64,000 bases of DNA, from NCBI GenBank assembly GCA_964036045.1, contig OZ038378.1, positions 187,364,001-187,428,000 on the forward strand. The letters are read 5' to 3'. The stretch is from Eutreptiella sp. 'Long Island Sound 2002' (Eukaryota > Protista > Euglenida). How positions within the stretch are numbered: the stretch's first letter is position 1; each line of letters begins with the position of its first letter. The notes beneath the pieces are model-generated. The model ran no database searches, was not told the origin of the DNA, and saw only the letters and a list, made by a program, of their open reading frames with translations. Both the position numbers and the translations under genes were made by a program. Shown here piece by piece: positions 23,908 through 54,460 of this stretch.

Positions 23908-24499
23908 TGGATGCAGTGCGACGGAAAGTTGTTGGTTTCTTTACCCTGTTTACCCTACCTCAAACAGAAACACAGCGAGTGGTTTATTGCCCCACTCACC
24001 TGGTGGTCTGCAACCCAATTGTCATATGTCACACTGCTCATCAGCACCTCCAAATTTGATTGTGCTGTGAAGTGCTTTGTTGTTTTACGCTGGATACTCT
24101 GGCTGGGATTTCAGGAGACTTTTCAGGGCTCTGTGTTTTTGCCGCAAACAAAAAACTCTGGACGAGGCAACTCATGATATGGGTGACGGTCCTGGGACCC
24201 ATGTCATCAAGACGCACTGTCCACTCAGGCAGTTGGCCAGCAGTATATGTGCATGATATACTCCTGCCCCTCCCAAATTTCTGATGGTACTGTGCAAAGG
24301 CAAGGCAGACCATCTGCTTTGATTGCCAAGACAATACACTACAGTGTGGCCAAGTCGGTCAGGAGCATACAATGTGGGTGATGTTGCGGAGGGTCCGTGG
24401 TTGCCCACTTTTACATGCTGCTGACTAGAAACATGCGCCATTTTGTACCCCCTCGCTGCAGCTTGGCCGCTGCCACCGCAACCTGTCCGAATCATCTGG

Positions 24500-24509
24500 T
24501 TTTTGTCAG
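24500..24509 (+). promoter_or_regulatory. Candidate 3' splice acceptor (trans-splice or 5'-UTR intron) 11 nt upstream of the ATG
   Basis: TTTTGTCAG|GCAAATCTCTG-ATG. The same 11-nt AG-to-ATG spacing occurs in the paralogue. Confidence 0.5.
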
Positions 24510-24520
24510 GCAAATCTCTG

Positions 24521-27361
24521 ATGTTCGACCCCGCCACATGGGAGGACGGGGGTGCGCTGCTGTCCGCAAGAACCCCAAGGCTGTACACCACCGGGGACGT
24601 GAGCCCGGAGGGCATGGGTCGAAGGTGGTGGGTGCTGCTCACCACTGCCGCGGTGGCATTCGCCTCCGGTCTGGTTTGCACTCTCTTTGTCCTTGTCGCT
24701 GCACCGGAATACTACGCACATGCCTCAACGGAGCTCCACATCAGGCCACCCTCGCAGGCGTTCCCACGGCCGCCGGCTGCTGCTCGTGCTCCAAGAGCGC
24801 CGCGCGTGCCCCTGTGGGCTGCACAACATCCCGCTGGGTCTGCAAAGCCGGCAGCGTCCCCCATGCAGCCTACAAAAACGGCAGATGCCGAGGAGGCGCT
24901 GCAAGCCGCAAGTGCAGCCCTTGAGAAAGCCCTCGACAAGGCGGAAGTGATTCTGAGGTATATTCTGAGCGATGACGCCAAGGACATGGACTTGCAGAAG
25001 GCCCAGAAGGCTGCGCAGATAATCGGGGATCTGGTGGATAAGCGCAGGAAGGCAGCCAAAGGGGCGGCGGACCCTGCGAAGGCCCTCGCGCTTGTGGAGC
25101 ACGCGGAGAGAGAGCAGGCTCTCGTGAACGCCGTCGTGGCCGCAATGCTCTCGAAGCAGGACGCCGAGAACGCCCGTCCGCCCTCCAAGCGCAACGAGCA
25201 GCCCCCGTCCCGGGGCTCCATGCCTCGTGTTGAGGGCGCTGCCCAGCCCTTGCCATCGGTGGCCGCCAGCTCCGCGCCCCGCAACGCACGCGCGACCCCG
25301 GCCAAGCCGCCCGCGCCGAAGGAGGACCCAGACGATCCGCAGGAGGCGCTCAATGCCGCCGTTGCGACCCTCCACAAGGCCCTGGAGCGGGCCGAAGTGA
25401 TCCTCATGTACTTCCTGAAGGAGGAGGCCCGGGACATGACGCTGGAGAAGGCGGAGAAGGTGCTGGAGGCGGTCGGCGCCCTTGTGGCCACCCGCCGGGC
25501 GGCCGCCAGAACGGCGGCCGACCCCGCGCCAGCCCTGGCGCTCGTGGAGCACGCGGAGAAGGAGCAGGTCGTTGTGCGCGACCTCGTGTCGGCCTTGGTC
25601 CGGAAGCAGGAGGCCGAGACGGCCCTGGCCGCTGCGGGCCGCGCCGCGCAGGGCCCGCCCGCCGGGTCCGGGCCCGCGCCGGCGGGTGTGCCGTCGACGC
25701 AGCTGGACGACCCGCACGAGGCACTGAAGGCGGCGGACGCGGCCCTGGACGGGGCCCTGGACAAGGCCGAGGTGGTGCTCGTGTGGGTGCTGGGGCCCGA
25801 CGCCGAGGACATGAGCCTGGCGAAGGCCCAGAAGGCGCTGACCGCCATCGACAATCTGCTGGAGAAGCGCTGGGAAGTGGCCGAGGCGGCGGCGGACCCC
25901 GTCCAACCTCTCGCCCTCGTGGAGCAGGCGCAGAAGAAGCAGCTGCTGCTGCGCAACGTCGTGGCCGCGATGCTGCTGAGGGAGGACGCGGCGCGGGCCC
26001 TGGGTCGCCCCGTGCGCCGGGCCGCGCGGGTGCCCCCCCCGGGGGCCGAGGCCGCGCCCCGGCCCGCCACGAACCTGGAGGACCCCCGGGAGGCGCTCGA
26101 GGCCGCGGATGCGGCCCTGCAGAGGGCCCTGGGCAAGGCTGAGGTGGTGCTGACGTGGGTGCTGGGGCCGGACGCCCGCGACATGAGCCTGGCGAAGGCG
26201 CGGAGGGTCCTGCACGTGATCGACGATTTGGTCACGAAGCGCAAGGAGGCGGTCCAGGTGGCGGCAGACCCGGTCCAGGCCCGTGCCCTCGTGAAGAAGG
26301 CGGAGAAGAAGCAGCTGGTGGTGAGCAACGTCGTGTCCGCGATGCTGCTGAAGCAGGAGGCCGAGCAGGCCCTTGGGGCCTCTGGTGCTGCACAGCCATC
26401 GCCGCCTGCGACACCAGTTACCGCCGCCCCCCGGCCGGCGTCGACGCCTGCACCGAGGGACTCCCTCCACACCGACCTGGCTGACCCCGAGGAGGCACTC
26501 CAAGCGGCGAACGTGGCCCTGGACAAAGCCCTGGACAAAGCGCAGGCGACCCTCATGTTCCTTCTCGGCCGCGACGCCCAGGACATGAGCATCGAGAAGG
26601 CGGAGAGGGCCCTGAAGCTGATGGCCGACAAGGTGCAGCAGCGCAAGGAGGCCGCCAAAGCGGCGCCAGACCCTGTTCAAGCGCTGGCACTAGTGGAGAA
26701 GGAGGAGAAGCAGCAGCAGCTTGTGCAGAAGGTCGTGTCAGCGATGGTGTTGCGGAAGGATTCTGAGCAGGCTCTTGGTGTCTCCGCCGTGGCCGTGCCA
26801 TCGTCGGCAGCCAAGTCGGCAAAGGGTTTGTCCCCCACTAACCTGGACGACCCTGAGGAGGCACTGACCGCCGCGTCCGCGGCCCTTGACCAAGCCCTTG
26901 ACAAGGCAGACGTGATTCTGAATTGGGTGCTCGGCGCTGAGGCGCGGGGCATGACCCTTGAGAAGGCGCGGACGGCCTTGGCAGAGATGGAGAACTTGGT
27001 GGGCCGGCGCAAGCGCGCGGCCCAGTACGCGGCAGACCCTGCGCTGGCTCTTGCGCTGGTGGAGAAGGCAGAGCAGAAGCAGCTTCTCGTGGAGAACGTC
27101 GTTGCGGCAATGGTTTTGAAGGAGGACGCGGGGCGCGCCCTGGGTCGCTCGAAGGGGACCGCACGGCCATCGTTGTCTGCCGGGTCCGAGGCGGCGCCTC
27201 CATCTGCCGCGAAGGCAGCGCTGTCTTCGACGGAATCATCGCCTGCGCTGGGGCCAGACCAGTCGTCCAGCGAATCACCCACGCCGCAGTGGCTGCTGGT
27301 GCTGGTGAATATAGCTCTGCTCGGCCTACTTGTGTGTCTGTGCGTGTCGTGCCTGCAGTAA
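24521..27361 (+). CDS. Intronless 946-aa protein: N-terminal hydrophobic segment, six ~96-aa helical repeats, C-terminal TM segment; function unknown
   Basis: Long open frame with strong GC3 bias. Six DDP.EAL.AA.AALDKALDKAEV.L...DM.L.KA...DP..ALALVE.AE.KQ.LV.NVV.AM units. Start placed at MFDP (24521) by alignment with the paralogue N-terminus. Ends QWLLVLVNIALLGLLVCLCVSCLQ-TAA. Confidence 0.9.
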   Translation: MFDPATWEDGGALLSARTPRLYTTGDVSPEGMGRRWWVLLTTAAVAFASGLVCTLFVLVAAPEYYAHASTELHIRPPSQAFPRPPAAARAPRAPRVPLWAAQHPAGSAKPAASPMQPTKTADAEEALQAASAALEKALDKAEVILRYILSDDAKDMDLQKAQKAAQIIGDLVDKRRKAAKGAADPAKALALVEHAEREQALVNAVVAAMLSKQDAENARPPSKRNEQPPSRGSMPRVEGAAQPLPSVAASSAPRNARATPAKPPAPKEDPDDPQEALNAAVATLHKALERAEVILMYFLKEEARDMTLEKAEKVLEAVGALVATRRAAARTAADPAPALALVEHAEKEQVVVRDLVSALVRKQEAETALAAAGRAAQGPPAGSGPAPAGVPSTQLDDPHEALKAADAALDGALDKAEVVLVWVLGPDAEDMSLAKAQKALTAIDNLLEKRWEVAEAAADPVQPLALVEQAQKKQLLLRNVVAAMLLREDAARALGRPVRRAARVPPPGAEAAPRPATNLEDPREALEAADAALQRALGKAEVVLTWVLGPDARDMSLAKARRVLHVIDDLVTKRKEAVQVAADPVQARALVKKAEKKQLVVSNVVSAMLLKQEAEQALGASGAAQPSPPATPVTAAPRPASTPAPRDSLHTDLADPEEALQAANVALDKALDKAQATLMFLLGRDAQDMSIEKAERALKLMADKVQQRKEAAKAAPDPVQALALVEKEEKQQQLVQKVVSAMVLRKDSEQALGVSAVAVPSSAAKSAKGLSPTNLDDPEEALTAASAALDQALDKADVILNWVLGAEARGMTLEKARTALAEMENLVGRRKRAAQYAADPALALALVEKAEQKQLLVENVVAAMVLKEDAGRALGRSKGTARPSLSAGSEAAPPSAAKAALSSTESSPALGPDQSSSESPTPQWLLVLVNIALLGLLVCLCVSCLQ

Positions 27362-29356
27362 TGCTGACCTATGACCTATTTGGGACTGGGGGGGGGGGCG
27401 TCTGCCTCCCACAGCGGGTGGGGGGGGGGGGTCCGGCATTTTCCCTCTCTTCTCAACGCAAACGCAAAGTAGGAGTTGCGCTGTTCAGCCTGGCGCCAGC
27501 ATTTGTGCATATCGCTGCCGAAAATCGCCTCTCATGGTGATCTGCTACTGCCGGGAACCATCCGCCGCTCTTGTTGGCACTGTCCTTTTTGTTGGCACTG
27601 GCGCGTGCCCTCGTACTGTCAGAACACGGGTTTTTTTGTAGTACGCTGTGCTGGAGGGCCGGACGCTGCTGTGCACTGTTGTTTAGAAAGGTACCCAGAA
27701 CAGGCTGAACACTCCTACGCTCTACGCGCCGTGTTGCTGCTCTGCGTGTTTCGCTCCCGCGTGTGTGGCCTGACCCAGTTTCCGCACACGCTGCCGGACC
27801 TGCAAGAGGTTCCGTGAAGTGTCCATCAACGTGCAACGCTTGACCTTGCGGGCATGGGCTGCGCGCGAGCGAACCCCCCCCCCTTTCCCCGCCCCGGCTT
27901 CCACAGCGCTCGCGGTGGCTTACGATCCCGGTGAGGAAGTAGTCGGAAAAGAGGAAGGGTTTGGAAAAGGGAAGGTTGTGCTTTTCTCTGGGGCACTGGA
28001 GGGGGGTGGCTGGGGCGGCATCCCTGTGGGGAACCGATGTGTGATACCTGTCATAAATCCAACAATGCGGTGAAAGCTGCTGAAAGGATGCGAATCAGCA
28101 TTGAGGTGGTGGAAGGCTTGTGGATCGTCGAAGTTGGGTCAGAGTTCTTGGGAATGCTACACCCAAGTGTTGGGAGTGACATCAGCAAACTGGACAGGAT
28201 GAAAGCAATACCCAAAGGTCACAGAACGCCTCCAACCCGAAGACTTGACGCACCACATGCAGACAGTGCAGACATGTAGACCGTATATGCCACAACACAC
28301 CCCGGCAGGGAGAGGCATGCACCCACGGCCTGAGCCCCAGGGGAAAGCCGAGAGCAGTACCCCCCCGAGCCCCAGGCAAGGAACGCCACACGGTCGGATG
28401 GCGCCAAGTGCCGCCGAACCGGCGGGGGCTGCAATAGGGCCACGGCTGCAGGCGTGCAGAGAGACAACACTTCGATTGCTTCTTCTACCGCCGCACAGAA
28501 GCAGTCGCAGCTGCAGAAATATTGAAGATCTCAAGCTTTTCGCTTTTTCTGGGGACAAAACGTGGTCACGCGTGCCCAAGCACAGGTACTCTCACATACG
28601 GCCTGTGCTCACCGCGGGGTAATACACACGGCCTAGCTCACTAAGCTGCACTCGTTTGCACAATGGGACTCCAAAGCCCTCTGCACCGCAAGCGTGCAGT
28701 ACCGCAGGCATTCCAGTGCAGTGCTTACGGAGGCACTGGCAACGTGTTGGTCCGGGCAGGCGCTGGGGCAGAGAGATATGAAGATGTGGCTTTGCGCTCG
28801 GGCTTTGCATTTGCGGAGTCCGAGCCTGCAAGGCAGAAGGGAATTACGGCACTGCTTTCGCACTGATCATTTGAGCCGGGATCTACCCTCCAAATTGCCT
28901 CAAGCCCAACTTGACCCAACTTTGCCCATCTGCAATGCTGGAAGACACGCTGTATGGGAAGCCCCCGTGCCATGCCGCTATCTGGGGCGGCAGAGGCACC
29001 ATCAGGAGTTCCGTGGGCCCGGTGTGCTGCTTTTCGGTGCTTTACAGTCAGCATTGGTATGCGTGTCTCCTCCTTCCGTGACGTGTGTGCGCGCGCGCGT
29101 TGTGTGTCTGACTGACTGACCGACCGACTCGAACTGCTCAGGAACAGTCCCAACCTGCTGCGGCTGAACCGTGTGGGACGAACTCCCCGCATTTCTTTCC
29201 CTGGCAGAAAGGCGCCATGTCATCATCCATGACTGCATGACATCGTTTCCGCCCTCACCGGGGGCTTGGCAGCTGCCAGACGAGATCGCTCCTGCAACCA
29301 GCGCCCGCGTCTTCTGCTTCTGTTGGTACCAAAGCGTGATCGTCTCCTGTCACTCC

Positions 29357-29474
<118 letters not shown>

Positions 29475-29645
29475 CGTGCGTGTGGCCGAAGGCGCTGTTA
29501 CACAAAGGCTGTGGCCGGGATGTCGTACCCGCAGGAAGAGGTAGACGGTTGGGCCCTGGACCTAAACCCTGAGGTACCCTGCGGCCCGGAGTGGTAGCGG
29601 TGCGAGGTCTGTCCCTGTGTTGACCTGTTTGCCCTCGTGGCAGCA

Positions 29646-29946
<301 letters not shown>

Positions 29947-32167
29947 CTCTGCAACCCATGAACCTGGGCATCCGATTCAGGGGAGGTCCGTGCATTCATT
30001 TCAGGCCACCCGCACCGAACACCGCCAGCCCTTTAGCCCTCTTCAGGCGGTTTCCAAACAGCTCCCGAGTTGTCTGTCTGGCCCCTTTGCTGCATTTGAC
30101 CGACGTGAATCAGATTATTGCGGAGCACGAGAGCACGCAACCCGTGCGTCATAGGGTAGCGGCGCTTCGGACAGCTGATCCAATACAGCATTTGGTGATG
30201 GGCCTGCAGGGTGGGGAGAAGAACATGATGGCCCTCACTGGCCCCTCATGCTTTCGATACCTCGAAATCTGACCTCCTCAGAATTGTTGTCTGAAGCTTT
30301 ATGATGGACCCAGCCCAGAGTACTGTGCTTTGCCGAGGCAAACAAACTAACACCATGGCCTCGTGCCAGCCCCCCTCCCCCAACTGCGAGAGCAACACCC
30401 TTGTCAGAGCAACAGTAGACTTTGTTTCCGCCACCTTTGGAACCGTGTCCTACTTTGCCCTTTATGAATAGCCCCCCTTGTCAGAGCAACGGTAGGTGTT
30501 GTTGCCGTCAAGTCTTGGGACTTTGGTGTTCCTGTCGCAAGGGATGGGGTTGCCTTACATGCACACGTGTGCACCTGGACGCCATCGCGCATCATACCGC
30601 CTGTGCATGTAGGCACCATCGTTTACCATACCTGTGTGTGCACCCATACGCCGCGTAAGGGGTGGGGGAGCATGCCAAAAAAAAAAGCCCAATTTTGCAT
30701 GATTTTGCATAACGGGGCTTGGGGCATAATTTGCACAATTATGCAACTCCGAACCTGGCGTTGGTTCCATGGTTGGCAGTTTGCTGTTGTGCGTGTTCCC
30801 TTTTGTCACTGCTGTTTGCTCTTTTCAACAACGGACAAAAATTTTGAAGCCACCGATTGTCGCGCAGCTACCATCAGATGAGCTTGACGATGACGACGTT
30901 CCTGAGTTTGATGATGGTGGCAGTGGGTAGTGGCACATTATTGGACCAGTCATATTTCTGAGCCCAGGGTGTTGTGCATTGCTTTGCCTCTTCTCTGCAT
31001 TTTTTTCTTATATATTTTTCTTGCAGAATTTTTGCATACCCTTTCATGGCCTAATTGGAGGCACCGATTTGCATGAATGTCCCACACCCCTGGGCCATGA
31101 CGCATCATACCGCCTGCATTTAGACGCTTTCCTTACCATAGCCTGTGTGCACTTAGACGCCACCACTTGCCATACGCCACCACTTGCCATACCGTGTGTA
31201 CACTTGAACACCATCATTACACTCGTTGTTTGTGCAGACTGCTGTGCGCACCACTTGAATATTACATCATATTTACATCACTGGACAATGAAGTGTTTGC
31301 CCAGTGCAGGAAGAACTTCAATGAGGCTACATCACAACTCATGCAGCAGTCATCTGATTTTGACATTGAAAAGAAGTGCATCTCCTCTGCCACAAAATTG
31401 CGTTGCGCTCTTCCAATAGACACACATTGCCCTTTTCCAACAGAATTGCATTGCATTCTAATGGAGTTGCCCTGCCCTCTTCCAAGAGTACCTCTTCCAG
31501 CTGACCGTTGCAGGAGGTATTGTCCGCCTCTTGCTTTCCTGCTGGTGCCGTCTTCACAGTGCTCTCCGCCCTCCCAGGGCAAGGGCATTTGATTGATGCC
31601 CTAACCTCTGGTTGAGGGCTGAGAGGCAGCTATTATGCTTTTGCTATTGAATAACCTTATGAAGGAATCAAAAAAGCCACGTGCACATTTCAATGCCTCT
31701 CGTTCTCTTTGGGCCATATATCCGGCACAGCAGTGCTCAGCTGTGAGTCCGTCCGGCCTTGGCTGCAATGCCCATACACTAAATATATCTCAAGAACATT
31801 TCCTTCTCATCCTAGCAGGGCTCACTGACACAATGCAAGTTTTTTACAAACAGCAGCAACCGGTGCTGTTGTTTTTACACAGTGACTTTTTAAGCTCTGT
31901 TTTGGTTCTGTCCTGTTTTGCTCTTAGCCGGCGTTCCAACGACGGGCCTCACAGTGGTTGGCGGTTCAGGAGGTGGGTGATGGTTGGTGGTAATTGATAG
32001 CGCTCGCCGATGTCCCCTTAGTTCTTTGTATCTTTCCCTCGCGCTAAATCACTGGTCACAAACTCCCTCGTCCACTGGACACTCGGTGTGACACCACTAA
32101 TCGCGTGTTTCCGCACAACTGTTTGTATCAGCACTCGAAATTTCACAAAATAAGACAGTTCCAAAGG

Positions 32168-38303: not shown

Positions 38304-39635
38304 ATGTCTGAAATTGCGAATATCAACAGGGCTGTTGCTATGCTTACGGAGAATTTGCGAGCGGTGGGGAAAATCTCATTGGTGCTGCTTGAAGGGGTCT
38401 GTGACAATCCAGATGTGTTCTTGAACAGAGCTCTGACTGTCAAGGAGAGCGTGACAGTCAATCCAGCGATGCTACAGCTGGCGGACAGGCCTCTGATTAC
38501 CAAGAAACAGCAGTATTCAGTATGGGTAATTCATACCACAACCGCGAGCAGGCTGACGCGTGCCTAGCCTAAATTCCGGCAAATTCGCATGTTTGCCCCG
38601 GGGGATGAGCCCAATGTTATAGTCTTCAAGGTGCCAAAGGAGGAAGAGAAGATGATGGTACTTCAGTACCATGTACAGTGGGAGCAGGAACTTTTCGACA
38701 GTCTGTCTATTCAGAAAACGGAGGCGGTGCTGGTTCCGGGGGCAGATCCGGGACAGTCCAGATACTTATTTTGCCAATTGTCTTTAGACCATGCGCACGA
38801 GCTTGTGCGACTGTATGGCAATAGAGCGCGGTTTGGCATCATGCCGCTGAAATGGTATCAGGGGGACGCGGTGGACGATCTTCCAAGAAGGTTTGAAGTT
38901 TACGTCAGCGCAGAGGTACGTGAGAAACACGCACCGTTTATGTTTGCCTATGTGCTGTCGCTGTTTTGGGAGCTCCGGCCCAATGGGCTCTTGGCAGCAC
39001 AATCGGGTGTGGCTATTCAAGTGGTCGGGTACAATAAAGTTCGACTGGGACTGTCTAACGCTGCGCACAACGTGCTGGTGGAACAGTTGGACAAGTGCTC
39101 CTCGCAGTATGGCCTTAAATTCAAAGATGAGGGTTCAGGGGAGTTTGTTGGCCAGGGTGACACGTACATACAGCCGCCAGCTGAGTGGGGACCGGCAGAT
39201 AACTTGTTCCTGATCAATGTGCCGCCGTGGTGGGGGGAAAAGGCGATCGTGGCAATCATGCAAACCTCTGAAGTGGAGAAACTTATTGTGCGACGCATGA
39301 GATGGTCGGTGGGTGAGATACGCACCCTCACGTGGAAAGTGTGTGTGCCGCAGGCAAAAACGCCCAAAATACTGGGATCTGTGTTTCGAGGATCCGAAGG
39401 AGACTTCCTGATGCAGGTCATTTCTCAACCTGAGTATGCCATGCGTAGGGAGCGAGGCAATCCTAAAGGTGGAGGCAAAGGAAGAGGCAAAGGGGGAGCC
39501 GGCTCCAGTAGTGCGTCTGTGTCCTCGTCGCGTAGCTACAGTTCAGTGGCATCGTCTGGTGCCTCCACGTCAGTGGCGTCGTCGGCTGCCATGGAGTGTG
39601 ATGTGGATATGAAGTTCAACAAGCGAAAGCGATGA
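38304..39635 (+). pseudogene. Retrotransposon ORF1 (~443 codons) interrupted by one in-frame TAG at 38565-38567
   Basis: Track ORFs 38034..38567 and 38589..39635 share a frame and are separated only by TAG plus 7 sense codons. The C-terminus is basic, G-rich (RGNPKGGGKGRGKGG) and S-rich. The start at ATG 38304 is an estimate. Confidence 0.7.
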
Positions 39636-42600
39636 TTTCTCTTTCCTTAATGAGCCGACGTTGGGCGGCGGTAACCACCAACGTCAATGGGTGGCATAGG
39701 AAGCCACCGGATAAGGCGGAAATGCGTAAAGTTCTGTTGATCCGTATGCTGAGACAACATCATGTGGACATAGCGGCAGTGCAGGAGCACCATATCACCA
39801 CACAACCGGTGCTCGATTCGCAAAAGCTGTGGGCGGAGAAGCGAGGGTATGGGTTGGCGGCAGTGCCGACCCCAACTAACATGCGTGGTGGGGTGTTATT
39901 AATGTGGAGGACCCCAGTGTGGGAATTGCAGTCGGCGGAGTACATTGGACATCGACTTATTGTAGCTGTGCTCAAGCATGTGTCGGGGGACTCCATACAA
40001 GTGCTCGCGGGGCATTTACATCACGATGCGCCTCAGCGACAAAAACAATGGGAGCAACTGGGAAGGCGATTGAGCCCAGCAGGGGCCCCACTGATCGCGC
40101 TGTGCGATCACAACTCCCATATAATTCCGGGAGTGGACAGTGAAGGAATGAAGGAAAGTAAATTAAAAACACAGCTCAATGACAAGGCTAGGCAGCAGGA
40201 GGTCCAGATACTGGAAAAGTGTAAGTTGCATGATGCGTGGGATGTCCTGTATGGCGAGTGTGATGACCGCCCGAATGGGTTCACGTACGGGTGGGTGCAG
40301 AAGCCTGAGGTGAGATGGAAGCCCAGACGACTAGACAGGGTGCATGTGGCAGACTCCCTACGGGAATATGTCCAAGGAGTGTACACCACAACAGCAGTGG
40401 CTTCCGACCACAAGGCAGTGGTGGTGCAATTTGAGCAACCGCCGATGCGCAGGGTGCAACCGCGTCTGCGGTTCCCAACAGAAATGTTAAGTGATCAGTC
40501 AGCAGTGGACAACCTACGAGGTCTGTTGCAGGGATTGCAGGCGCCAGACTCGCAAAATGTATTCCAGTGGTGGAATGAAGCTGAGGCAATCATTCAAGAA
40601 CAAGGGGTCCAGTGGCGACGAATGAACCCACGAGAAGATCACTTGCCGATACAGGGCATTCTGCGATTGTCATCCCCCGGAAGGGTGGTCCCGGCTGGGT
40701 GGGAATATTTGGCAGACAAAGGGGTCTGCCCAGAAACATCAGCTCAGGCGTACCAGTTGCTGGTGGTATATGCTGACCGGGAGGCCAAAGACTCTCAAAG
40801 GCAATCACTGTGTCATATGCTCAAGGAGGAGTTTCTCAGCAAGCGGCAAGAGGCTGCTGCACAGGCTGAACGCCGGAGGAAGGTACATGTGCAATTGAGG
40901 GAGTTGCAAGCCAAGAGGCAGCTGTATGGTATCAAGAACAAACAGGGGGTGTACTGCACACGGCCGCAAGACATCGCGACCGCATTTAAGGAATTCTGGG
41001 AGCAAGTCATGAAAAAACCAGACCAGTCGGTAGAACAGTGCAGAGAGTGGATGCTAGGTCTGGGGGATACCGCGCAGGGTGCGACAGGCATTGCCCAAGC
41101 TGACAAAGGAAGTGCCCGAGGACACGGTGCAGGCTGCGCTCGAGCGCATGAAGAAGGGATTGTCGCCGGGATTAGACGGGATCCCGGTTGAGGTCTACTC
41201 AGCAATGGCAGAGGTGTTCATCCCTCCTATGACTATGGCGATCAAAAGCTGTCTTCAACAGCGTCAGGTGCCAGCACAATGGCTGGTGAGCTTGCAGCAA
41301 AATATACCAAAGGGTCGGGCAGCGGACACAGTCGGCGAGATGCGACCTATTGCATTACAGACGGTGATTTGGAAATGGATGGCTACAACCATCCTAGTCC
41401 TCATAGAGGACGCGTTGCAGGTAGCAGTGCCACCAGCCCAAAAGGGGTTTTTGAAAAATAGACAAATGCTCCAGCACATAATAAACGCCAAGGGCCTGTG
41501 GCACTCGGAGACAGAGGGCACATTTCTGTCAGTGGACTTCGCCAAAGCTTATGATTCAGTATCACACAGCTTCTTTGCAGCAGGCATGCAGTTCTTGGGA
41601 ATGCCGACTGAGATCACAGAGCTTCTAGTGCATTCACTGTCAGGACCGGTGCAGTTCTGTGTGGACAATGGTGTGGTTCCTGGCATTTCCATGCAGCCGG
41701 AGTCTGGGATTCGCCAAGGCGACCCACTATCCCCGCCAATCTTTGCGTTACTAACAGTCTTCCTGGTGTTCCAGTTCCGGAAACGGTGTCCGGAAGCACA
41801 GCTAATGCTGTATGCAGATGACTTATTAATATGGATACCTGGGGGGGATGAGGAAGCTCTGAAACAAGCAGAACGAGCTATGAGTCTGCTCAATGAGTTC
41901 GGGAAGTTCTCGGGACTACATGTCAATCCGTCCAAATCTTTTGCGGTACTCAAACGGGTGTGCGGTCCGTTGCCAGAGCGCTATGTTGGGTTGGAAGTGC
42001 GGGAAAGAGTCAAGTACCTGGGTGTTTTAATTGGACAGGTGAATGCGGAGCAGGCCTATGCTGGTCCAATGGCTAAAATGAAGTCCAGGGCGACTTTTCT
42101 GAAAACATTACCATTGGATCTGTGGGAACGTGCTGAAATCTACAAGGTGTGGGTGCAGCCTGTGGTGCAGTTAACAGCACGAGTGTATGAACCATCACAG
42201 AAGGTGTTGACGACTCTCAATGTTATATTCAAAATTGCCTTGGGGATCTCCACGTGGGACCTCAGCCCAGCGATGTTGGCGCTGCCGTACAACCAGGGTG
42301 GAGTGTGGACGTACCCACTGGCTGTCTGGGTGCGATTTCAGTATGGGCGCTTGTTCCAATCTGTTCTAAAGGATAAAGTGTGCTTCTTAGGCCAATGGGT
42401 AGCGAATTTCGAACAGTGGGCGGAGTCAATTGGGCTGTTCCTGAGGCCATCTTTCTTGCCATATCTGCAGCTAGCTGTGGTAAAAATGAGCGCGCGAACG
42501 TGGCTGCAAGCATCAGTGCTCATGTTTTCGCGGTTGCGCCAGCGGGCGGCAGCTCCGCCCTTGGTGGGAACACCCAGCAACATGCCGCTGTGGCACAACG

Positions 42601-44117
42601 TGCTCTTGAGAAACAAATTGGGACATACCTATTATTCTCCGAGTCTCGTGCGCAAGGGGATTAGCACATTGGCACAAATTGTGGAGGGAGGAGAGTTGCA
42701 GGCGGCGGTGAAACTACCTCCGACATGGGCGCCGGTGTATCGGACGAAAATACCACAAGTGCTTGCTTTACCAGTGCAGGATTTGCCTAAAGAGTGGACG
42801 CAACCAAATCAGAAAATGCTAGCAGTGCTTTGCCCGCTGGAGCCGCCACAAAAACGGCAGGAGCCAGAGGTGTGGGAACAGTTAGCGCAACTCAAGTTAC
42901 CGGGGGCGCAACGAGATTTCATGCGAAGGGCGCTGTGGAAAAAGCTAGCAGTGGGGGCGCGCACGCAGCACGCATATCATCAGCCCAACTGCATTTTATG
43001 CTCTGTACCCGAAACTATCAAACATGTGCTTACAGCGTGCAAATTCTGGCCAGTGGCCGTGGATATTGTGCGTAAAGCCTTTGGCCCGGTATGGGGCCGA
43101 GACGGGGCCATGTGCCCCATGGATACGTTGCTTGTGGCTCAGCCACTGTTATCGCTGAGCACCACGCAGGGACTGGCGCTATGGGCAGCGGCGAGAGCGT
43201 CCTGGGTCCTGCGATGTGATGCAAAATTTAGATCGCTGTCGGTGGCAATGCCTGACTTTGTAGTAGCCTGGATGACACTTGTAGAGGTGTGGGCGTCAGC
43301 ACCACAGTCATCATTTGTGAGACAAGAGGCCAAGCATCTGTGCAACTGTCTAAGGAAATTCTTGGATGGAGATCAGCCATTTCCCTCCATGCAGCCACAG
43401 GGGGCAATTGTCAGAGGACGGGGGGTACAAGTGCCAAAAAAGGCAAAATGGGCATCGGTTTTGCCGGGCCTACTGCAGAGAATTGACGCTAAAGCACAGC
43501 AAGGATGGAATGTGGCTTTTGTTGATGGGTCCAAGCAGGAGACAGGTGGTGTGCATCATGCAGGCTATGGTGTGTGGTTTGGGGACAATGACGCTCGCAA
43601 TGAGGAGCTGCCGCTATTGAACACAGAGCGGCAATCTATAACTCGGGCAGAGCTGAGAGCAGCCCTTCGGGCTGTATATCATAAATGCCCAGGACGGCCT
43701 CTCCTGGTGGTGACAGACTCGGAACTGGTGTATAAAGGGTTAACAGGAAAATGCAACAAGTGGTCCAGGCACAAATGGGTGGGCTCCAGGGGACCGCTGG
43801 CGCATGTTGATCTGTGGGAGGATTTGTGGGGGCAGTGGCAGCTACTAGGGGACAGTGTGGATGTGCTATGGGTGCCGTCACATGTGGGGGTCACGGGAAA
43901 TGAGCATGCAGACGCCAAGGCGTCCAAGGGAGCGAGAAAGGCATATGAATGTGTCATGAAACAAAAATCAGTGCAGGATATCTGGGGGGAGTTGGGACTG
44001 CAGGAAATGCCTGACTCGTATGACACGGACTCAAACTGCTCGGGGGGGTCCCACATTTCAGAGGAATTAAATGAGGACAACTCAGAGAACTGGCCCAAGC
44101 GGTGTCGGTACAGCTAA
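39632..44117 (+). pseudogene. Retrotransposon ORF2 (APE endonuclease - RT - zinc finger - RNase H), 1494 aa once one G is removed from the G5 run at 41062-41066
   Basis: CTG GGG G ATA CCG: deleting one G joins ...EWMLGLG to IPRRVRQALPKLTKEV... and fuses track ORFs 39632..41191 and 41079..44117. Confidence 0.88.
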
Positions 44118-45190: not shown

Positions 45191-45201
45191 CTTTCATTCA
45201 G
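45191..45201 (+). promoter_or_regulatory. Candidate 3' splice acceptor 11 nt upstream of the ATG
   Basis: CTTTCATTCAG|GCGAGGTTCCC-ATG, the same spacing as at 24508-24521. Confidence 0.5.
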
Positions 45202-45212
45202 GCGAGGTTCCC

Positions 45213-47645
45213 ATGTTGAACATCGCCGCACTGGAGGAAGCTGGGGAGGTGTTGCTGTCAAAGAAACGGCTGTACCACGCCCTGCATGCGAACTCGGCAA
45301 ACAAAAGTCGCTGGGTGGTCCCCATCACTGCAGCGGCAGCATTCGCCTCCGGTGTGATCTCGACCCTACTTGTCCAACAGGCTGCACCGGGTTATCACGC
45401 CTTTGACCCCACCGAGCTCCGTGTGATAGCAAGCCTACAAGTCATCCCGCAGCCACAAGTGCAGAATATTGCCGGTGCACCCAGAGCACAGCATGGGCCA
45501 CCAAGGTCTGCCGAGCAGCCCGACAGACCCACAACTGCAAAGCCACCACCACTGCCCATGCAGCCCACAAAAGTGGATGATCCTGCGGTGGCACCTGCAC
45601 CAAAGGACTCACTCCGCAACGAGCTGGTCAACCCCGAGGAGGCACTGAAAGCCGCAAGTGCAGCCCTTGACAAAGCCCTCGACAAAGCTGAAGTGATTCT
45701 GATGTATATTCTCAAGGATGACGCGAAGGACATGGACTTGCCGAAGGCCCAGAAGGCTGCGAAGATCGTCGGCAATTTGGTGAGTAAGCGCAAGAAGGCA
45801 GCCAAAGGGGCGGCGGACCCTGCCCTCGCTCTTGCACTTGTGGAGCACGCGGAGAAAGAGCAGGTTCTCGTGAACAACGTTGTGGCCGCAATGCTGTCGA
45901 AGCAGGACGCCGAGAAAGCCCTTGTCCGCTCCGTGGTCGCTGCATCGTCCTCCAGCGGATCCGCCCTTCCCTCGACGGACCTGCCCGTCACAAACCTGGA
46001 CGACCCACAGGCGGCCCTGGATGCCGCCACCGCGGCCCTTGACCAAGCCCTTGCCAAGGCCGACGTGATTCTCACGTGGGTTCTCGGCAGCGATGCGAAG
46101 AACATGAACCTGGAGAAGGCGCAGAAGGCCCTGAGGGCGATTGATGACCTGGTCCAAGGGCGCAAGGAGGCGGCCAAGGTGGCGACGGACCCCGCCCAAG
46201 CCCTTGCAATGCTGGACAAAGCCGAGAGAAAGCGGGTTCTGTTGAACAACGTCGTGTCAGCAATGGTCATCAAACAGGACTGGGAGCGCGCCCTGGCTCG
46301 CTCTGGGCGCACTGCAAAGCCCGGGGCATCCTCGTCCCAGTCGGCGAGAGCCAAGCCCCCACCAAAGGAGCTAACCCCCACGCACCTGGACGACCCACAG
46401 GAAGCGCTCAAAGCGGCACAGGCGGCCCTGAACAAAGCGCTGGACAAGGCAGACGTCGTTCTCTCGTGGATTCTGGGAGCCGAGGCACGTGACATGGACT
46501 TGGAGAAGGCCCAGAAGGCTGCAGCGATGGTTGATGGTCTGGTGGACAAGCGCAAGGAGGCAGCCAAGGCGGCGGCCGACCCTGCGCTACCCCTTGCGCT
46601 GGTGGAGAAGGCGGAGAAGAAGCAGCTGCTCATGAACAACGTCGTGTCAGCGATGTTGTTGAAGCAGGCTGCTGAGCAGACCCTGGGCCGCTCTAAGGGG
46701 ACTACGCCTTCCAAGTCGAAGGGCGCGTTGAAACCCGACAAGCTCCACACAGACCTGAGCAAGCCCGAGGAGGCACTGCAAGCGGCGAATGCGGCGCTTG
46801 GCAAGGCCATTGACAAGGCGGAAGTGACTCTGACGTTCCTTCTCGGGGACGACGCCAAGGACATGACCATCGAGAAGGCAGAGAAGGCCCTGCAGCTGAT
46901 GGACGAGTTGGTGCAGAAGCGCAAGGAGGCCGCCAAAGTGGCGCGAGACCCGCTTCCGGCGCTTGCGCTCGTGGAGCAGGAGGAGAAGCAGCAGCAGCTT
47001 GTGAAGAATGTCTTGTCAGCGATGATGTTGCAACAGGATTGGGGGCGAGCCGTGGCTCGCTCCAAAGAGCCTCTTCCAGCGGCGGTGGGGTCGATGCCAC
47101 CCAAGGATTTGTCCCCCACAAACCTGGACGACCCGCAGGAGGCGCTCAAAGCAGCACAGGCGGCCCTGGACAAAGCCCTGGACAAAGCGGAGGTCATTCT
47201 CTCGTGGGTATTGGGGGCTGACGCACGGGACATGACCCTGGAGAAGGCCCAGAAGGCTTTGGCGATGCTGGACGGTCTGGTGGACCAGCGCAAGGAGGCG
47301 GCCAAGGAGGTGGCAGACCCGGCGCAAGCGCATCTGATGGTGGAGAAGGCCGAGAGGAAGCAGCTGCTCGTGAACAACGTGGTGTCCGCAATGATCATCA
47401 AGGAGGACTGGGAGCGAGCTCTCGGCCGCGCCACGGGGACGGCACAGTCGTCGTCGTCTGCCGCATCGAAGACTGCCCCGTCCTCCGCCCAGTCGTCTGC
47501 TCAATCGAAGACCAGTCCGGAGGGGACCAGTCCCGAGGCTGCGAGTGCCTCGTTTACAACGGCCGTGCGCTGGCTGTCTGACTGGTGGACGTGGCTGACT
47601 CACCCCAGCACAACGGCTGCGGCTGAAGGGGCCGCCCCGAGATGA
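45213..47645 (+). CDS. Intronless 810-aa paralogue of 24521-27361 with five ~96-aa helical repeats; function unknown
   Basis: Same N-terminal hydrophobic leader (AAAAFASGVISTLL), same MQPTK motif, five copies of the same domain. Trp-rich C-tail (RWLSDWWTWL) replaces the long TM. Stop TGA. Confidence 0.9.
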   Translation: MLNIAALEEAGEVLLSKKRLYHALHANSANKSRWVVPITAAAAFASGVISTLLVQQAAPGYHAFDPTELRVIASLQVIPQPQVQNIAGAPRAQHGPPRSAEQPDRPTTAKPPPLPMQPTKVDDPAVAPAPKDSLRNELVNPEEALKAASAALDKALDKAEVILMYILKDDAKDMDLPKAQKAAKIVGNLVSKRKKAAKGAADPALALALVEHAEKEQVLVNNVVAAMLSKQDAEKALVRSVVAASSSSGSALPSTDLPVTNLDDPQAALDAATAALDQALAKADVILTWVLGSDAKNMNLEKAQKALRAIDDLVQGRKEAAKVATDPAQALAMLDKAERKRVLLNNVVSAMVIKQDWERALARSGRTAKPGASSSQSARAKPPPKELTPTHLDDPQEALKAAQAALNKALDKADVVLSWILGAEARDMDLEKAQKAAAMVDGLVDKRKEAAKAAADPALPLALVEKAEKKQLLMNNVVSAMLLKQAAEQTLGRSKGTTPSKSKGALKPDKLHTDLSKPEEALQAANAALGKAIDKAEVTLTFLLGDDAKDMTIEKAEKALQLMDELVQKRKEAAKVARDPLPALALVEQEEKQQQLVKNVLSAMMLQQDWGRAVARSKEPLPAAVGSMPPKDLSPTNLDDPQEALKAAQAALDKALDKAEVILSWVLGADARDMTLEKAQKALAMLDGLVDQRKEAAKEVADPAQAHLMVEKAERKQLLVNNVVSAMIIKEDWERALGRATGTAQSSSSAASKTAPSSAQSSAQSKTSPEGTSPEAASASFTTAVRWLSDWWTWLTHPSTTAAAEGAAPR

Positions 47646-49998
47646 GGGAAATGTGACCTGAGCTGCCAGTTCACAATATCATTTGATCCCAGGTTTCGCA
47701 GAAACCACAGTTTGGCCCCAGCGTCCCCCTACTTCTGCATACAGCCAGGTTAGGGACCTCGTTATTGTCCATCTCGACCCCACCTAAATCCTGGGATGCT
47801 CAGGTGACGGGGGGTGCGGAGGCGCAGGCCACAGCCCAGGCTATGGCTCAGCAGGAACGCCGCTGAGTTTGTTACTCAGACCCCAGATCTTTGGCTGCAA
47901 CCGTCGTGAATGGGGCACACGGGAGTTCGATGGCTTTCCCGTGCCCAGTCCGTTTGTCGCGCTCCCGCTCTTGTCGACACCGCCGGGTCGCCCCTCCGCA
48001 GGTTTTGTTTTGTTGGCAGGTCGTCAAGCCCCCTCAAATCCCGTCGTATTCCAGGTTTCCACGGCCCAGCGCCGTGCTTGCCGACAGTAGCAGCAGCAGC
48101 ATGGGGGCAGTGGCGCAGGAGCAGGTACGCATTGGACCAAAAGTTTTCAGGAGCGCCACCCCCACCCTCTCCATCGGCCCCCCTGTGAGGTGTTGCTGAG
48201 CTGGGTGACGAGGTTGCAGAAGTTTGGCCGTGCAGTGTGCTTCATGCGGCGCTGTGCATGTGTTGAGTCCCACTGCTGCCGCGCACCGCAACAGCCGTTG
48301 ACAGGACGGAACCCGCACCCTCCCCCCCAGGCCTCCACCAACCAGCAGGTCGCGCAAAACGTATGGCGCTGGACACCGGTTGTGGCCCCGCCAGCTTTTA
48401 TGGAGCGTCCCCCAGCAGAGCCCCACCCCTGCGTCCAAGCCTCTCTCGCCCCCCGCCGTGCTGTTGTTCCGCTGCGTCCCTGATCAGCAGCACCGCTCCT
48501 GACTCCCGACCCCTCCATGTGAGCGTTGTGTGATTTCACTGTGTGACCTCATGCCCCCCCCAGGGACGCCATGTCTGAGCATGCCTGTGCATCTCTATGT
48601 CGGTTCGCACCCGTTTGCTGGCATGGCTACTGGGGTGGGTGGGTGCCCGCCTGCGTACGGGCGTGCGTTCGTGCGTGCCTGGGTGTGTTTCCGTACCTAT
48701 ATAAATACCATCCATTCCTGTGCATCCAAGCCTCCGCCTAGCGCAGAGACTGATCCCTTCAGGTGTAGTACCCACGGAGAGCCTTCATATAATCGTTGCC
48801 CCTCGATGCAGCAGTAAACTCTTTTCTGAGTGGACGTAATCTCCTCTCTGTCTCTCTCTTCCTGCTGACCATTGCAGGAGCGCTTGGCCCCCCCTTCTCC
48901 ATCCTCGACTTGCGCCAACTGCTGGCGGAACGCTGCAGGGCTGTCTCCTCCCATCCTCCGGCTCTGTCTTCGGGAGACCAATGCCGCCAGACCACCTCTG
49001 CCGGTGCGAGCCTCTGTTGGACAAACACATGGGGGCATTGCCTCACTTCCGTCCGCTACTGCGCCACCTCGCAACATTGACCCGTCTGCCAAACGCTTTG
49101 CGTTTCCCCAATGTTCCAAGTGGGGCCCGCGGACACAGCACAGGTCTCGGGGGTTCTGGAGCAGAACAAGAGCTTCTGCGCCCGCTGTCCTTGTGCTTTG
49201 TGCCCCCCCCCAAAACTTGCGCTATACTGCCCCAATGCCCTTTGCCAGCGGTCAAAGCAAGCTCATTCCCACTGTGGGCCACAGCAAAGGGCATGGGCCC
49301 AACTGTGGCCTGCCTTGCCTGACGCGTGGCCTGTGCGGCGAGAAGCCCTGAAATTGCCAGGATCCGTCCGTTGCTGACCTTTATCCCCGCTACTTGCTGA
49401 TCCCTGACTCATTATGCCTTGCCCCTGATACAGCACTTTAAGGGACCTTTGAGAACGAATCTTCACATCTGCACCACCGCCTGTTCGGGACCGAAAGCGG
49501 GGCGTGTGTCGGGGGGTGTTACACTTCTTCCGGCTGCATGGAAAGACACGAGGAATTGCTGTTCAATGCCCGTTGCATGGCTGCCGCCGCCTGCTTGAAA
49601 ACTGGGCAACACCGATTGCAAAACGCCTGGAAATGCCGCGCACACCGCCGATCGGTAACACTCGGTGATTGGGACGCCCAGGCCCAGGTCTTTCCATGGG
49701 AATAGCTGCACGTTAAGCCTGCCGGCACGGGCAGGTGCAGCGGACGCCACAGGGACAGTATGCCGCAGTGGCGAGCGTTGGGACCAGCATTCTACCAGCA
49801 GGTCACACCAAAAATATGGTACGGGACAGCAGTTGTGTTGCACAGTAACTGAGCAGCCTTGGTGGAACAGCCCCCACAGAACCCAAAATATTTCGCCAAA
49901 GCAGAAGGTTTCCGTTGCATAGCACTGCAAATGGGTGATGTTGCAGGTCTCGTTGCTGGGCAGGTCCACGGTGCATCACCACACACCTATGAGCATTG

Positions 49999-52068: not shown

Positions 52069-54460
52069 GATGGCTGGCCGGAACATTAATTTGGATGGCT
52101 TGGCGCACCCAAGCGAACGTTCCCTCATAGTATGGGGTGCAAGCTCCTGTTTGCATGCGGTGGGTGTGAAGCCGAGAACACTGGGAAGCGAGCGGAAGTA
52201 GGGAGAAAGAGCCATCCGGCCAGGGGGATCCAAGTGTTCGGGGCGTTGACGACCTGGACAGGACAGCCTAAGCCCCGAGTCACAGCTGCCCAAAGCAAGG
52301 CCAAGTTCAAAGGCCCATGACGGTTGGCAAAACGATTTTGCATGCGAGTGGAAGGAGAGGTAGATGGGGGGGGGGGGTTGGGGGAGAGAGAGCCAATTTC
52401 CTCTCCATCTTGCATGCATACTTTGGACTTATTCCAGGAAATCCTTCATCCACCCCCCCCAAAAAAGTTGCAGCTTTCATGGGATCCCATCATGCTGCAG
52501 ATGTTGGCACGTCCATGAATGCTTTTGGAGGTTGCTTGTGCTACTCCCTTTTATTGCTTGGCTTCCACCATTTTTGGCCTGTTGTGCACCTTTGGACCCA
52601 TTTCCCTAGGGGAATGCCTTGCCCGCAGTGTGCCCGCAGTGTGCCCGTAGTGCAAAGTTTTGTATCCTAGTTTTGGCCCTTTTCCACAAGTGTGTTGTTC
52701 CATAACTGGGTTTTCAAAGCTTCTTGTGTATTTGCGATGTGTCATATTTTACTTTTCACGTATTTTCACCCATCTTCCGCCATTTTGAGCCCCTTGAGTT
52801 AGGGATATGGACTCTCAACCCACGCTCTGTTGTGTGGCCCCTTGAGTGGTGGCCACCCCCGTGAATCCATATGCTTTGATTTCTCGCTGCACACGAGTGA
52901 AACTGATGGCATCCGATTGAGGAGATTATGGCCCACCGACACTGAGCTGACATAGTTTACAACGGTTAGACTATGATGGTATCTAATCATCTTCACTCCC
53001 CAAACTCTCTTTCTTGATCGCCGAACATGCTCCAGTGGATGTTGAGGAAAATGATGACGGTGTTTGTTGTCAACTGTGCTCACCATCATGAAGCTATATC
53101 AGAGTGTGGCGCATGTCATTTGAACATGTGCCCCTCTTGTATGCCTTTGCATAGTTGCAATTTGGATTTGTAATTGTAAAAACAAGGGATTTCACACATC
53201 AGATTGTTCCGCCGTGTTATTGCATCTGCATGTGTTGCTTGATGTTTCCTCCCTCCTTCTACTCTGGGTGGTCGTTGATACATGTGCCCACAGTGCGCCC
53301 GCAGTGCACCCGCAGTGCGCCCGCAGTGCACCCACAGTGCAAAGTTTGTCCCTAGATTTGTTCATGCTGGACCTCCCTGGGGGAGCATTTGGTGCCGCAC
53401 GCAGATGGTGCAACCATTAGGGCAACGGGGGGTAGGAGTAGCAGGAGCGGAGTGGACAATGGAAAATGGTGGAAACCAATTGTGGGAAATAATCCAGCTG
53501 TTTCCTCGACAACCACATCCAAAGGTGCACATGGGGTGCCCCTTGCCCCAAACCAGGGCAGTTTACCAAGATGCAAAAACTGCCGAAAGCAGGCCCATTC
53601 ACTGCGTCCCAACACTAGCTGTGGTGTCGCTGGTGCCCCAAACGATCGCAGGCAGGTCGCCCGAGGGTATGGCTGCAAGTAGAAATATGACAGTACGGCA
53701 TTGATTTCGCAGCACAGGGCACACGATACGTGCTGACCTGGACATGCACTGTGTTTGTTTTGTTTTTGGTATACGGAAGTTGCCTGGTTCGCAGTTTGTT
53801 TAGTTTGCATGAACTGCCGGTGTCTTCATGGCATTCGAACACTGTCTGGGCAGCGCCGGTACTGCGGGGCATGGGGAAGGATTCAATGGACGAACGGGAT
53901 TGCAATGTAATCCTGTTCTTGGTCTCCCTGTGATGTGTAACGCACTGTGAAGCAACGCCCTGGAGAGGCCCACTGAGGCATTGGGGTCTCCCAGGCTGCA
54001 GTAGGTACCACCCACCGCCATTCTCTCTCAAGCGTGTGTTACGTCGGTTTGTCCATTCCGTTCCTGTTGTTCTTGGCTTGTTTGCTACTTCGAGTCTTTT
54101 CCGCCAGTGGCGCCCTGCAGGTCTGGCAGACCTCGGTGGGAACCATCCCGCTCCTTAAAATGAATTCCTTCGGTGGAAACCATCCCGTTGTCCTGCTTGC
54201 GCTCTTGTGTGCCATCCGACGACATGCATCAAAAGGATTGCGGAGTAAGCGGAATGTGCACTTCCATGACAATCGGTTGTGTTAAACGGATGGTGGTAAT
54301 GCTCATAACTGGAGAAGGGCTGGGTTGGGGCTGGGCGGAGTATTGGGCTGTGTCATGCCAGGGGCTGGGCGGGGTATTGGGGTGTGTCAGTATTGAGTTA
54401 TGTCAGTCCAATCACACCCTCTGTTTGTGCTCAGGACCTACAGGTTTTGCCCTCAGCCCC

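Follow-up and report, generated by a model that had tools for sequence, protein, structure and literature searches.

A repeat-protein gene and its paralogue

The window analysed here, a stretch of 64,000 nt from the genome of the euglenid Eutreptiella sp. 'Long Island Sound 2002', contains two related genes on the plus strand, gene A and gene B, which encode chains of six and five copies, respectively, of an all-helical unit of 100 amino acids (aa) behind a common N-terminal module. The coding sequence of gene A (24521-27361) comprises 946 codons plus stop without interruption and lies in a reading frame that is open over 972 codons (24443-27361), as revealed by open reading frame analysis of the window; the identical protein was called in the ENA assembly ERZ25074135 (P0001). 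Its product has a computed mass of 99.3 kDa and an isoelectric point (pI) of 6.1. We assigned the start to the ATG at 24521 because the opening residues align with the starts of 10 paralogues (common motif M..PA..E.GG.LLS..P.LYTT.DV; alignment A2, the N-terminal modules of 11 paralogues) and because a pyrimidine tract followed by AG ends at 24509, 11 nt upstream. Read from the sequence, this tract (24500-24509) is a predicted spliced-leader acceptor that would leave an 11-nt 5′ untranslated region (UTR), an assignment made because gene B has the same geometry.

Hydrophobic segments were scored according to Kyte and Doolittle in a 19-residue window. In gene A, a conserved N-terminal tail (aa 1-35, 24521-24625; motif M..PAPMEAGG.LLSS..PRLYTTVDV.SE in alignment A2) precedes a hydrophobic segment (aa 36-61, 24626-24703; score 2.38) that is conserved in the same alignment and constitutes a putative signal-anchor or transmembrane helix. 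A basic, Pro/Ala-rich juxtamembrane region follows (aa 62-116, 24704-24868) with the family motif TELH(V/I)RP...P.P...HxP; in the form TELHVRP..PQPH..HxP, it closes the N-terminal module after tail and anchor, which is how we define the core subfamily. The profile of this module matches gene A at E 2.0e-41 and gene B at E 4.6e-35. Then come unit 1 (24869-25168), which is of an N-proximal type, unit 2 (25322-25621), the most diverged one, which clusters with the N-proximal type, units 3 (25697-25996) and 4 (26069-26368), a recent duplication pair, unit 5 (26471-26770), which is of a penultimate type, and unit 6 (26837-27136). The linkers between them measure 51, 25, 24, 34 and 22 aa and consist of 26% Ala, 21% Pro, 11% Ser, 9% Arg and 8% Gly, resulting in a pronounced charge pattern of acidic units (pI 4.9) vs basic linkers (pI 12). 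At the C terminus, a spacer read from the sequence as Ser/Ala/Pro-rich (aa 873-923, 27137-27289) leads into a hydrophobic tail (aa 924-946, 27290-27358; score 2.83) that ends one residue before the stop. Such a segment ends three core members, gene A, P0003 and P0017.

The paralogue, gene B (45213-47645), encodes a protein of 810 aa in which the N-terminal module known from gene A is followed by five units (45618-45917, 45990-46289, 46380-46679, 46749-47048 and 47118-47417, from the unit alignment). It is expressed and intronless, since a transcript bearing the leader is colinear with the genome: the 4377-nt JGI transcript contig L048 starts with TTTTTTTCG, which we take to be the tail of the spliced leader, and then matches from 45202 onwards, directly behind an AG acceptor (45200-45201) that leaves an 11-nt UTR. 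L048 is identical to the window from 45202 to 49550 except for one scaffold gap, and the 3′ UTR of gene B is therefore unusually long with at least 1.9 kb (47646-49550). Gene B lacks the C-terminal hydrophobic tail and has a Trp-rich end instead (..RWLSDWWTWL.., compare ..IYDWWNNDRW.. in the paralogue C23). The MMETSP0810 protein P0026 turned out to be an assembly chimera, in which residues 1 to ~413 originate from another paralogue, the C8 gene, and the remainder from gene B (46380-47642); the joint falls inside the conserved stretch LVEKAEKKQ.

The unit is an old, selected module with a predicted three-helix fold

Three alignments underlie the following results: A2, introduced above, A1, with the 11 units of genes A and B, and A3, with 46 units from 14 genes. 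The columns of A1 average 71% identity, and 17 of them do not vary. The units of gene A share 45-64% pairwise identity among themselves, far beyond chance, and all six match the 100-position unit profile over its full length (E 2.5e-38 to 3.2e-42). Between the two genes, identity is 79% for the first units and 69% for the pairs 5/4 and 6/5 (gene A/gene B). The ratio of nonsynonymous to synonymous substitution rates (dN/dS) between matched units of genes A and B ranges from 0.24 to 0.45; hence, the units are under purifying selection. A tandem repeat (period of 372 nt, 78% matches) can be recognized in the DNA for units 3 and 4 only, from which we conclude that the array is old. In the maximum-likelihood tree of the 46 units, one clade (support 99/95) unites the N-proximal units of genes A, B, C23 and C7, and a second one (99/91) their penultimate units, namely unit 5 of gene A and unit 4 of the other three. 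The ordered array is therefore older than the duplications of the genes, and each unit type is specific to its position.

Using the 11 sequences of A1, AlphaFold2 returned a model with a mean predicted local distance difference test score (pLDDT) of 74.6; with the 46 units of A3 this rose to 94.8 (predicted template modelling score, pTM, 0.84), and the helices of this model span residues 6-36, 41-62 and 68-99. A fold of three helices is thus confidently predicted for the unit. Conserved strings stand at the unit edges, TNLDDP before and ALGRS after; they fit helix caps, since helix 1 of the model begins at the Pro.

A preliminary description of this locus, made from the sequence alone, had recognized six repeats in 24521-27361, which the alignment bears out, and had given a consensus string that agrees with those of A1 and A3. 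Its repeat layout stands as well, with measured values of 100 aa for the unit and 22-51 aa for the linkers instead of ~96 and 26-54 aa; the longer linkers resulted from the shorter unit used there. The suggested bundle of three to four helices is narrowed to three by the model. Its statement that Cys residues are missing holds for the units and needs correction for the ends of the protein, because the two hydrophobic end segments contain all four of them (C53; C939, C941 and C944). No N-x-S/T sequon exists anywhere in the 946 aa.

We also considered a Rubisco-binding motif of the Chlamydomonas type and rejected it: DWERAL-like strings occur in three units of gene B and in none of gene A, and they are off the published pattern.

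A family without known relatives

Pfam yielded no match above noise for the whole gene A protein, for any of the 11 units or for nine paralogues. Searching the PDB with a sequence profile gave weak matches to designed proteins and, as the best one, an unrelated polyketide synthase linker (E 0.024). With the unit model as query, Foldseek found nothing below E = 0.5 in the PDB, searches with two models by Foldseek and VIA-align brought up nothing beyond generic helical hairpins or bundles, and one unit used as query against the ESM Atlas gave no usable match. Spectrin (PF00435) was not listed in an hmmscan of the 11 units with E up to 10. Among solenoid families, TPR_5 alone appeared, for two of the 11 units and below threshold (E 0.047), and the period of ~100 aa with three helices differs from a helix pair of 34-47 aa.

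An hmmsearch with A1 against 1.84 billion representative proteins identified 16 proteins at a threshold of E ≤ 0.001, of which 14 also passed E ≤ 1e-10. They came from the assembly of this genome (ERZ25074135), from JGI, MMETSP and EukProt transcriptomes of Eutreptiella, and from one Logan contig. Proteins of MMETSP0809/0810 (taxid 73025, Eutreptiella gymnastica) share 90% clusters with proteins of this assembly. The Logan contig (ERR9850604) has a guanine plus cytosine (GC) content of 57.5% and units 36-48% identical to unit 5 of gene B, and therefore originates from a different, euglenid-like organism. No other group was matched in the 1.84 billion proteins, among which Euglena proteomes were probably covered, EukProt being a source. 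In this genome, the unit profile located at least 57 units at ~17 loci, in genes of which some are intronless and others split by introns; the intron-split paralogues C3, C5a, C7 and C8 were analysed exon by exon.

These results support the unit as a new sequence and fold family, judged by sequence and model searches and seen only in the Eutreptiella lineage. They correspond to the preliminary description, which had suspected an undescribed all-helical family unlike TPR, ARM/HEAT or spectrin repeats, for none of which Pfam gives a match above threshold. Its expectation that 11 copies would suffice for a profile proved right, given 16 proteins and 57 genomic units found with A1, and the profile search and the structure prediction with Foldseek that it had proposed were both run without matching a characterized family.

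The N-terminal module is present in 12 genes of the 2.28-Gb genome, all of them unit-bearing, and in no other gene. It is thus a part of these proteins and not a generic presequence; a role as general targeting presequence was ruled out by the same distribution. A relation to euglenid class I presequences was rejected, too, as there is no significant similarity to those of P0012 or P0026 (E 0.36-1.1). Genes A and B have a single hydrophobic segment behind a conserved tail of 35-45 aa and no tripartite class I presequence.

Several family members combine units with other domains. P0005 has a PQ-loop core of seven helices (PF04193, E 7e-35) behind the N-terminal module and four units; the protein truly starts upstream of the called Met, with MSSPAPIDLLSS..FYTP. 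The closest PQ-loop gene of this genome, PQLC2-like and 61% identical (L050:1900-2970; G000:C14:15298899-15299969, minus strand), also possesses an additional hydrophobic helix at the N terminus but only a loop of ~70 aa, no units, and a start (MLPPAPML..) that recalls the start of the N-terminal module. Different species may have acquired units by insertion into this lumenal loop, or lost them from it. P0012, the product of the C22 gene, comprises a signal peptide, a Ser/Thr-rich stretch, a second hydrophobic segment, an NAD-epimerase-like domain (an Atlas lead of 0.96 only, with no Pfam or PDB match) and one C-terminal unit. The C8 gene has a class I-like presequence, with exons upstream of two units in the genome. 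A frame of 2520 aa on C21 (L032 and L046; G000:C21:38295407-38302966, minus strand) starts with two hydrophobic segments, continues with ~1500 aa of acidic EEEEAVEEAAAEVKA-type repeats of 15-16 aa each, and contains two units, a transmembrane segment and a helical tail.

On the Logan contig, the 3′ end of a light-harvesting-complex (LHC) gene (..NGRLAMIGLFGF..; L047:1-152) lies ~285 nt upstream, on the same strand, of a gene with N-terminal module, units and PQ-loop core. This may reflect very tight spacing, or a read-through or chimeric transcript.

A proposed membrane-tethered chain of helical modules

We propose that gene A encodes an intact, uncleaved and non-enzymatic chain of acidic three-helix modules, serving as binding or spacer elements, which is tethered to a membrane on its non-cytosolic side, and give this reading an even chance of being correct. 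The conserved N-terminal tail of ~35 residues would stay in the cytosol, and the hydrophobic segment at aa 36-61 would act as a signal-anchor for the endoplasmic reticulum (ER). The remainder would be lumenal or extracellular, with six rigid acidic modules on flexible, basic Ala/Pro/Ser-rich spacers, closed by the C-terminal hydrophobic tail, which may be a second membrane anchor, either a transmembrane helix or a signal of the glycosylphosphatidylinositol (GPI) type. Having no catalytic residues, the modules would most likely be protein-binding or spacer elements, and the whole protein a long flexible tether or coat held to the membrane at one or both ends.

PQ-loop proteins such as cystinosin and PQLC2 have a lumenal N terminus and a cytosolic C terminus. 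As the extra N-terminal helix and the units of P0005 precede its PQ-loop core, these units should be lumenal and the tail cytosolic. We infer the same topology for gene A because its N-terminal module is homologous to that of P0005, just as we infer its uncleaved state and its binding or spacer role. The gene A and B proteins may belong to the cell surface or endomembranes, or to the space beneath the outermost plastid membrane.

Several observations weigh against this proposal. A gene A transcript or a 90%-identical protein was not found in transcript and protein collections. A word-based protein search with the full protein or its N-terminal 130 residues returned only itself and one paralogue, P0002, which corresponds to gene C23 of this genome (ERZ25074135), and metagenome scans with A1 and with a 24-nt pattern of gene A gave no match, although entries close to this genome may be concealed from such scans. 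For the N-terminal anchor, the flanking charges are ambiguous regarding its orientation, and an ectodomain of ~800 residues without Cys or N-glycosylation sequon is unusual for a surface protein. The ALGRS/TNLDDP strings could be cleavage sites rather than helix caps. Furthermore, the N termini of P0012, the C8 gene and the C21 frame look like euglenid class I plastid presequences. The units of these members would be in the plastid if imported, or in the cytosol if the proteins are type I membrane proteins; therefore, the module is not tied to one compartment, which suggests a general-purpose binding or spacer element. Finally, the entire picture was drawn from sequence and predicted structure.

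An alternative is a plastid-resident scaffold, which differs from the proposed chain in compartment only. Entering the ER via the N-terminal hydrophobic segment, the protein would travel in vesicles to the three-membrane plastid, where the units would lie under the outermost membrane, in the stroma or at the thylakoids. All euglenid plastid proteins enter through the ER (PMC4938576), and the region behind the anchor is basic, rich in Pro, Ala and Arg and poor in acidic residues, as in transit peptides. Three other unit-bearing proteins have class I-like presequences, with the presequence exons of C8 genomically upstream of its units, and the epimerase-like enzyme in P0012, as a lead only, is of a kind common in plastid-bearing eukaryotes. 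However, no signal peptide precedes the conserved tail of the N-terminal module in genes A and B. Transit peptides lack the sequence conservation of this module, which is found on no protein outside the family in this genome and does not significantly resemble the class I presequences of P0012 and P0026. In addition, the units of P0005 are fused to a PQLC2-like transporter, a type usually residing in lysosome or vacuole membranes. Taken together, we regard a plastid-resident scaffold as rather unlikely. More speculative still is a eutreptialean invention, a polyampholyte tether with its ends anchored in membranes, which spaces or joins membranes that are not present in this form in other algae, for instance the outermost, host-derived plastid envelope membrane and the next one, or forms a coat of cell or flagellum, in which case the units would constitute a new family of protein-binding folds; we offer this as an idea with little probability.

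Comparison with euglenid polyproteins

The preliminary description had left open whether the array is a tethered scaffold or a polyprotein that is processed into single units. Euglenid polyproteins, whose existence it had correctly stated, come from long intronless messages. Behind a tripartite presequence, their near-identical units are connected by conserved decapeptides, which are cut out in the plastid (PMC4938576, PMC6242988); in Euglena the linker decapeptide is NMAAMTGEKD (PMC4938576). Applied to gene A, such processing would cut an imported chain at the linkers into six free helical proteins of ~11 kDa. We used this genome's own RbcS polyprotein as comparator, which is encoded at two loci, L051/L052 (G000:C11:15694405-15699510) and L053/L054 (G000:C14:2151317-2156418), in single frames of 1693 and 1642 aa. 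Each has at least 11 units, ~90% identical (by eye), which alternate between a few variants, and linkers (..WAMAGTTGEKD or TWAVTGEKE) that resemble the Euglena decapeptide. Thus, the processing motif seems to be conserved across Euglenophyceae, as far as these sequences tell.

The presence of true polyproteins in the same genome, the known euglenid habit of making them from long intronless messages and the semi-conserved residues at the unit boundaries would all be compatible with processing of gene A. Its sequence nevertheless fails three of the four defining features, and the polyprotein reading is disfavoured. The GEKD/GEKE-type motif is absent from genes A and B, whose linkers of 22-51 aa are mutually unrelated, the tripartite presequence is missing, and the units are 45-64% identical, with types that are position-specific across paralogues. 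With anchors at both ends, cleavage would moreover keep nothing but the end fragments in the membrane, and the unit also exists singly, fused directly to another domain in P0012. Position-specific units, the single-unit fusion and the end anchors favour an intact multi-module protein, and the anatomy fits the tethered scaffold; we consider processing into free units very improbable.

Resemblance to known systems

Although the family is new, the kind of protein is familiar, namely a tandem array of small helical bundles. Spectrin repeats (PF00435) are the nearest in form only, with ~100-106 residues, three long antiparallel helices, tandem arrangement and a non-catalytic role as spacer or scaffold. 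They are cytoskeletal and abut helix to helix without linkers, whereas the units of gene A are separated by disordered basic linkers and come with membrane anchors, and neither a sequence match nor a fold match above noise connects the two. Gene A might still be a very diverged spectrin-like, talin-rod-like, BAG/MIT-like or FIVAR/GA-like repeat that the searches missed: length and three-helix layout are as in spectrin-type repeats, talin, BAG, syntaxin Habc, MIT and spectrin appear among the low-ranking fold matches, and one paralogue has a FIVAR match below threshold (E 0.0088; 17 bits vs a cut-off of 29). Against this stand the Pfam cut-off, which no unit reaches, the contrast between the continuous helix joining spectrin repeats and the linkers of gene A, and a profile search of 1.84 billion proteins that drew in no member of another family, so that a hidden known family appears very improbable.

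In bacteria, three-helix surface arrays such as protein A domains, GA and the FIVAR modules of Ebh-type giants resemble gene A as beads on a string with a membrane or wall anchor and Pro-rich spacers, and their modules serve as binding sites. These modules comprise 45-70 residues, unlike the 100 found here, and the single FIVAR score below threshold is the sole link and does not establish homology. Spacers of the mucin or hydroxyproline-rich glycoprotein type in eukaryotic surface proteins are likewise low-complexity linkers, rich in Ala, Pro, Ser and Thr, that separate folded modules on the non-cytosolic side of a membrane anchor. In mucin-type spacer proteins, the folded domains are disulfide-rich, whereas gene A, as read from its sequence, has Cys-free helical modules and strongly basic linkers (pI 12). 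With the euglenid plastid polyproteins (RbcS, LHC, EF-Ts), genes A and B share the organism group, a long, intronless, trans-spliced message and tandem units behind one N-terminal region; near-identical units, short GEKD/GEKE linkers and the tripartite presequence set those polyproteins apart.

That gene A is a silent or decaying duplicate, with only gene B functional, could be read from its missing transcript and near-identical protein and from its higher GC content (68.8% vs 62.0% in gene B), but is highly improbable in view of collections in which records close to this genome may be hidden, a frame open over 946 codons, the intact start motif, anchors and six units, the dN/dS of 0.24-0.45 to gene B and the preserved leader-acceptor geometry.

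Taken alone, a new domain of helical repeats restricted to a single genus-level lineage is moderately interesting. Here, it defines an expanded, membrane-anchored family of ~17 loci, in some members of which the units are combined with a PQ-loop transporter, with an epimerase-like protein behind a plastid-type presequence or with a giant array of acidic repeats. Euglenids possess lineage-specific structures with unknown proteins, such as the three-membrane plastid envelope with its vesicle import, the pellicle and the flagellar coats, and the family provides concrete candidates for localization and interaction studies in Eutreptiella. Moreover, one genome contrasts a true polyprotein, RbcS, with a repeat protein that merely resembles one.

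Other features of the window

The window is eukaryotic in character, with GC-rich coding islands, long (CA)n tracts and one long interspersed nuclear element (LINE). Runs of 10-12 G lie directly 3′ of the gene A stop (27388-27432), and a near-perfect (CA)n/(TG)n microsatellite of ~750 bp is located 2 kb 3′ of the gene (29200-29950). The LINE separates genes A and B (38589-44117, plus strand) and encodes an endonuclease (PF03372, 39632-41191) and a region with reverse transcriptase, zf-RVT and RNase H domains (41079-44117); its upstream open reading frame of 348 aa (38589-39635) has no Pfam match. Downstream of gene B, an open frame at 54173-56614 (plus strand) encodes a class III adenylate/guanylate cyclase catalytic domain (PF00211, E 6e-47) behind several hydrophobic segments.

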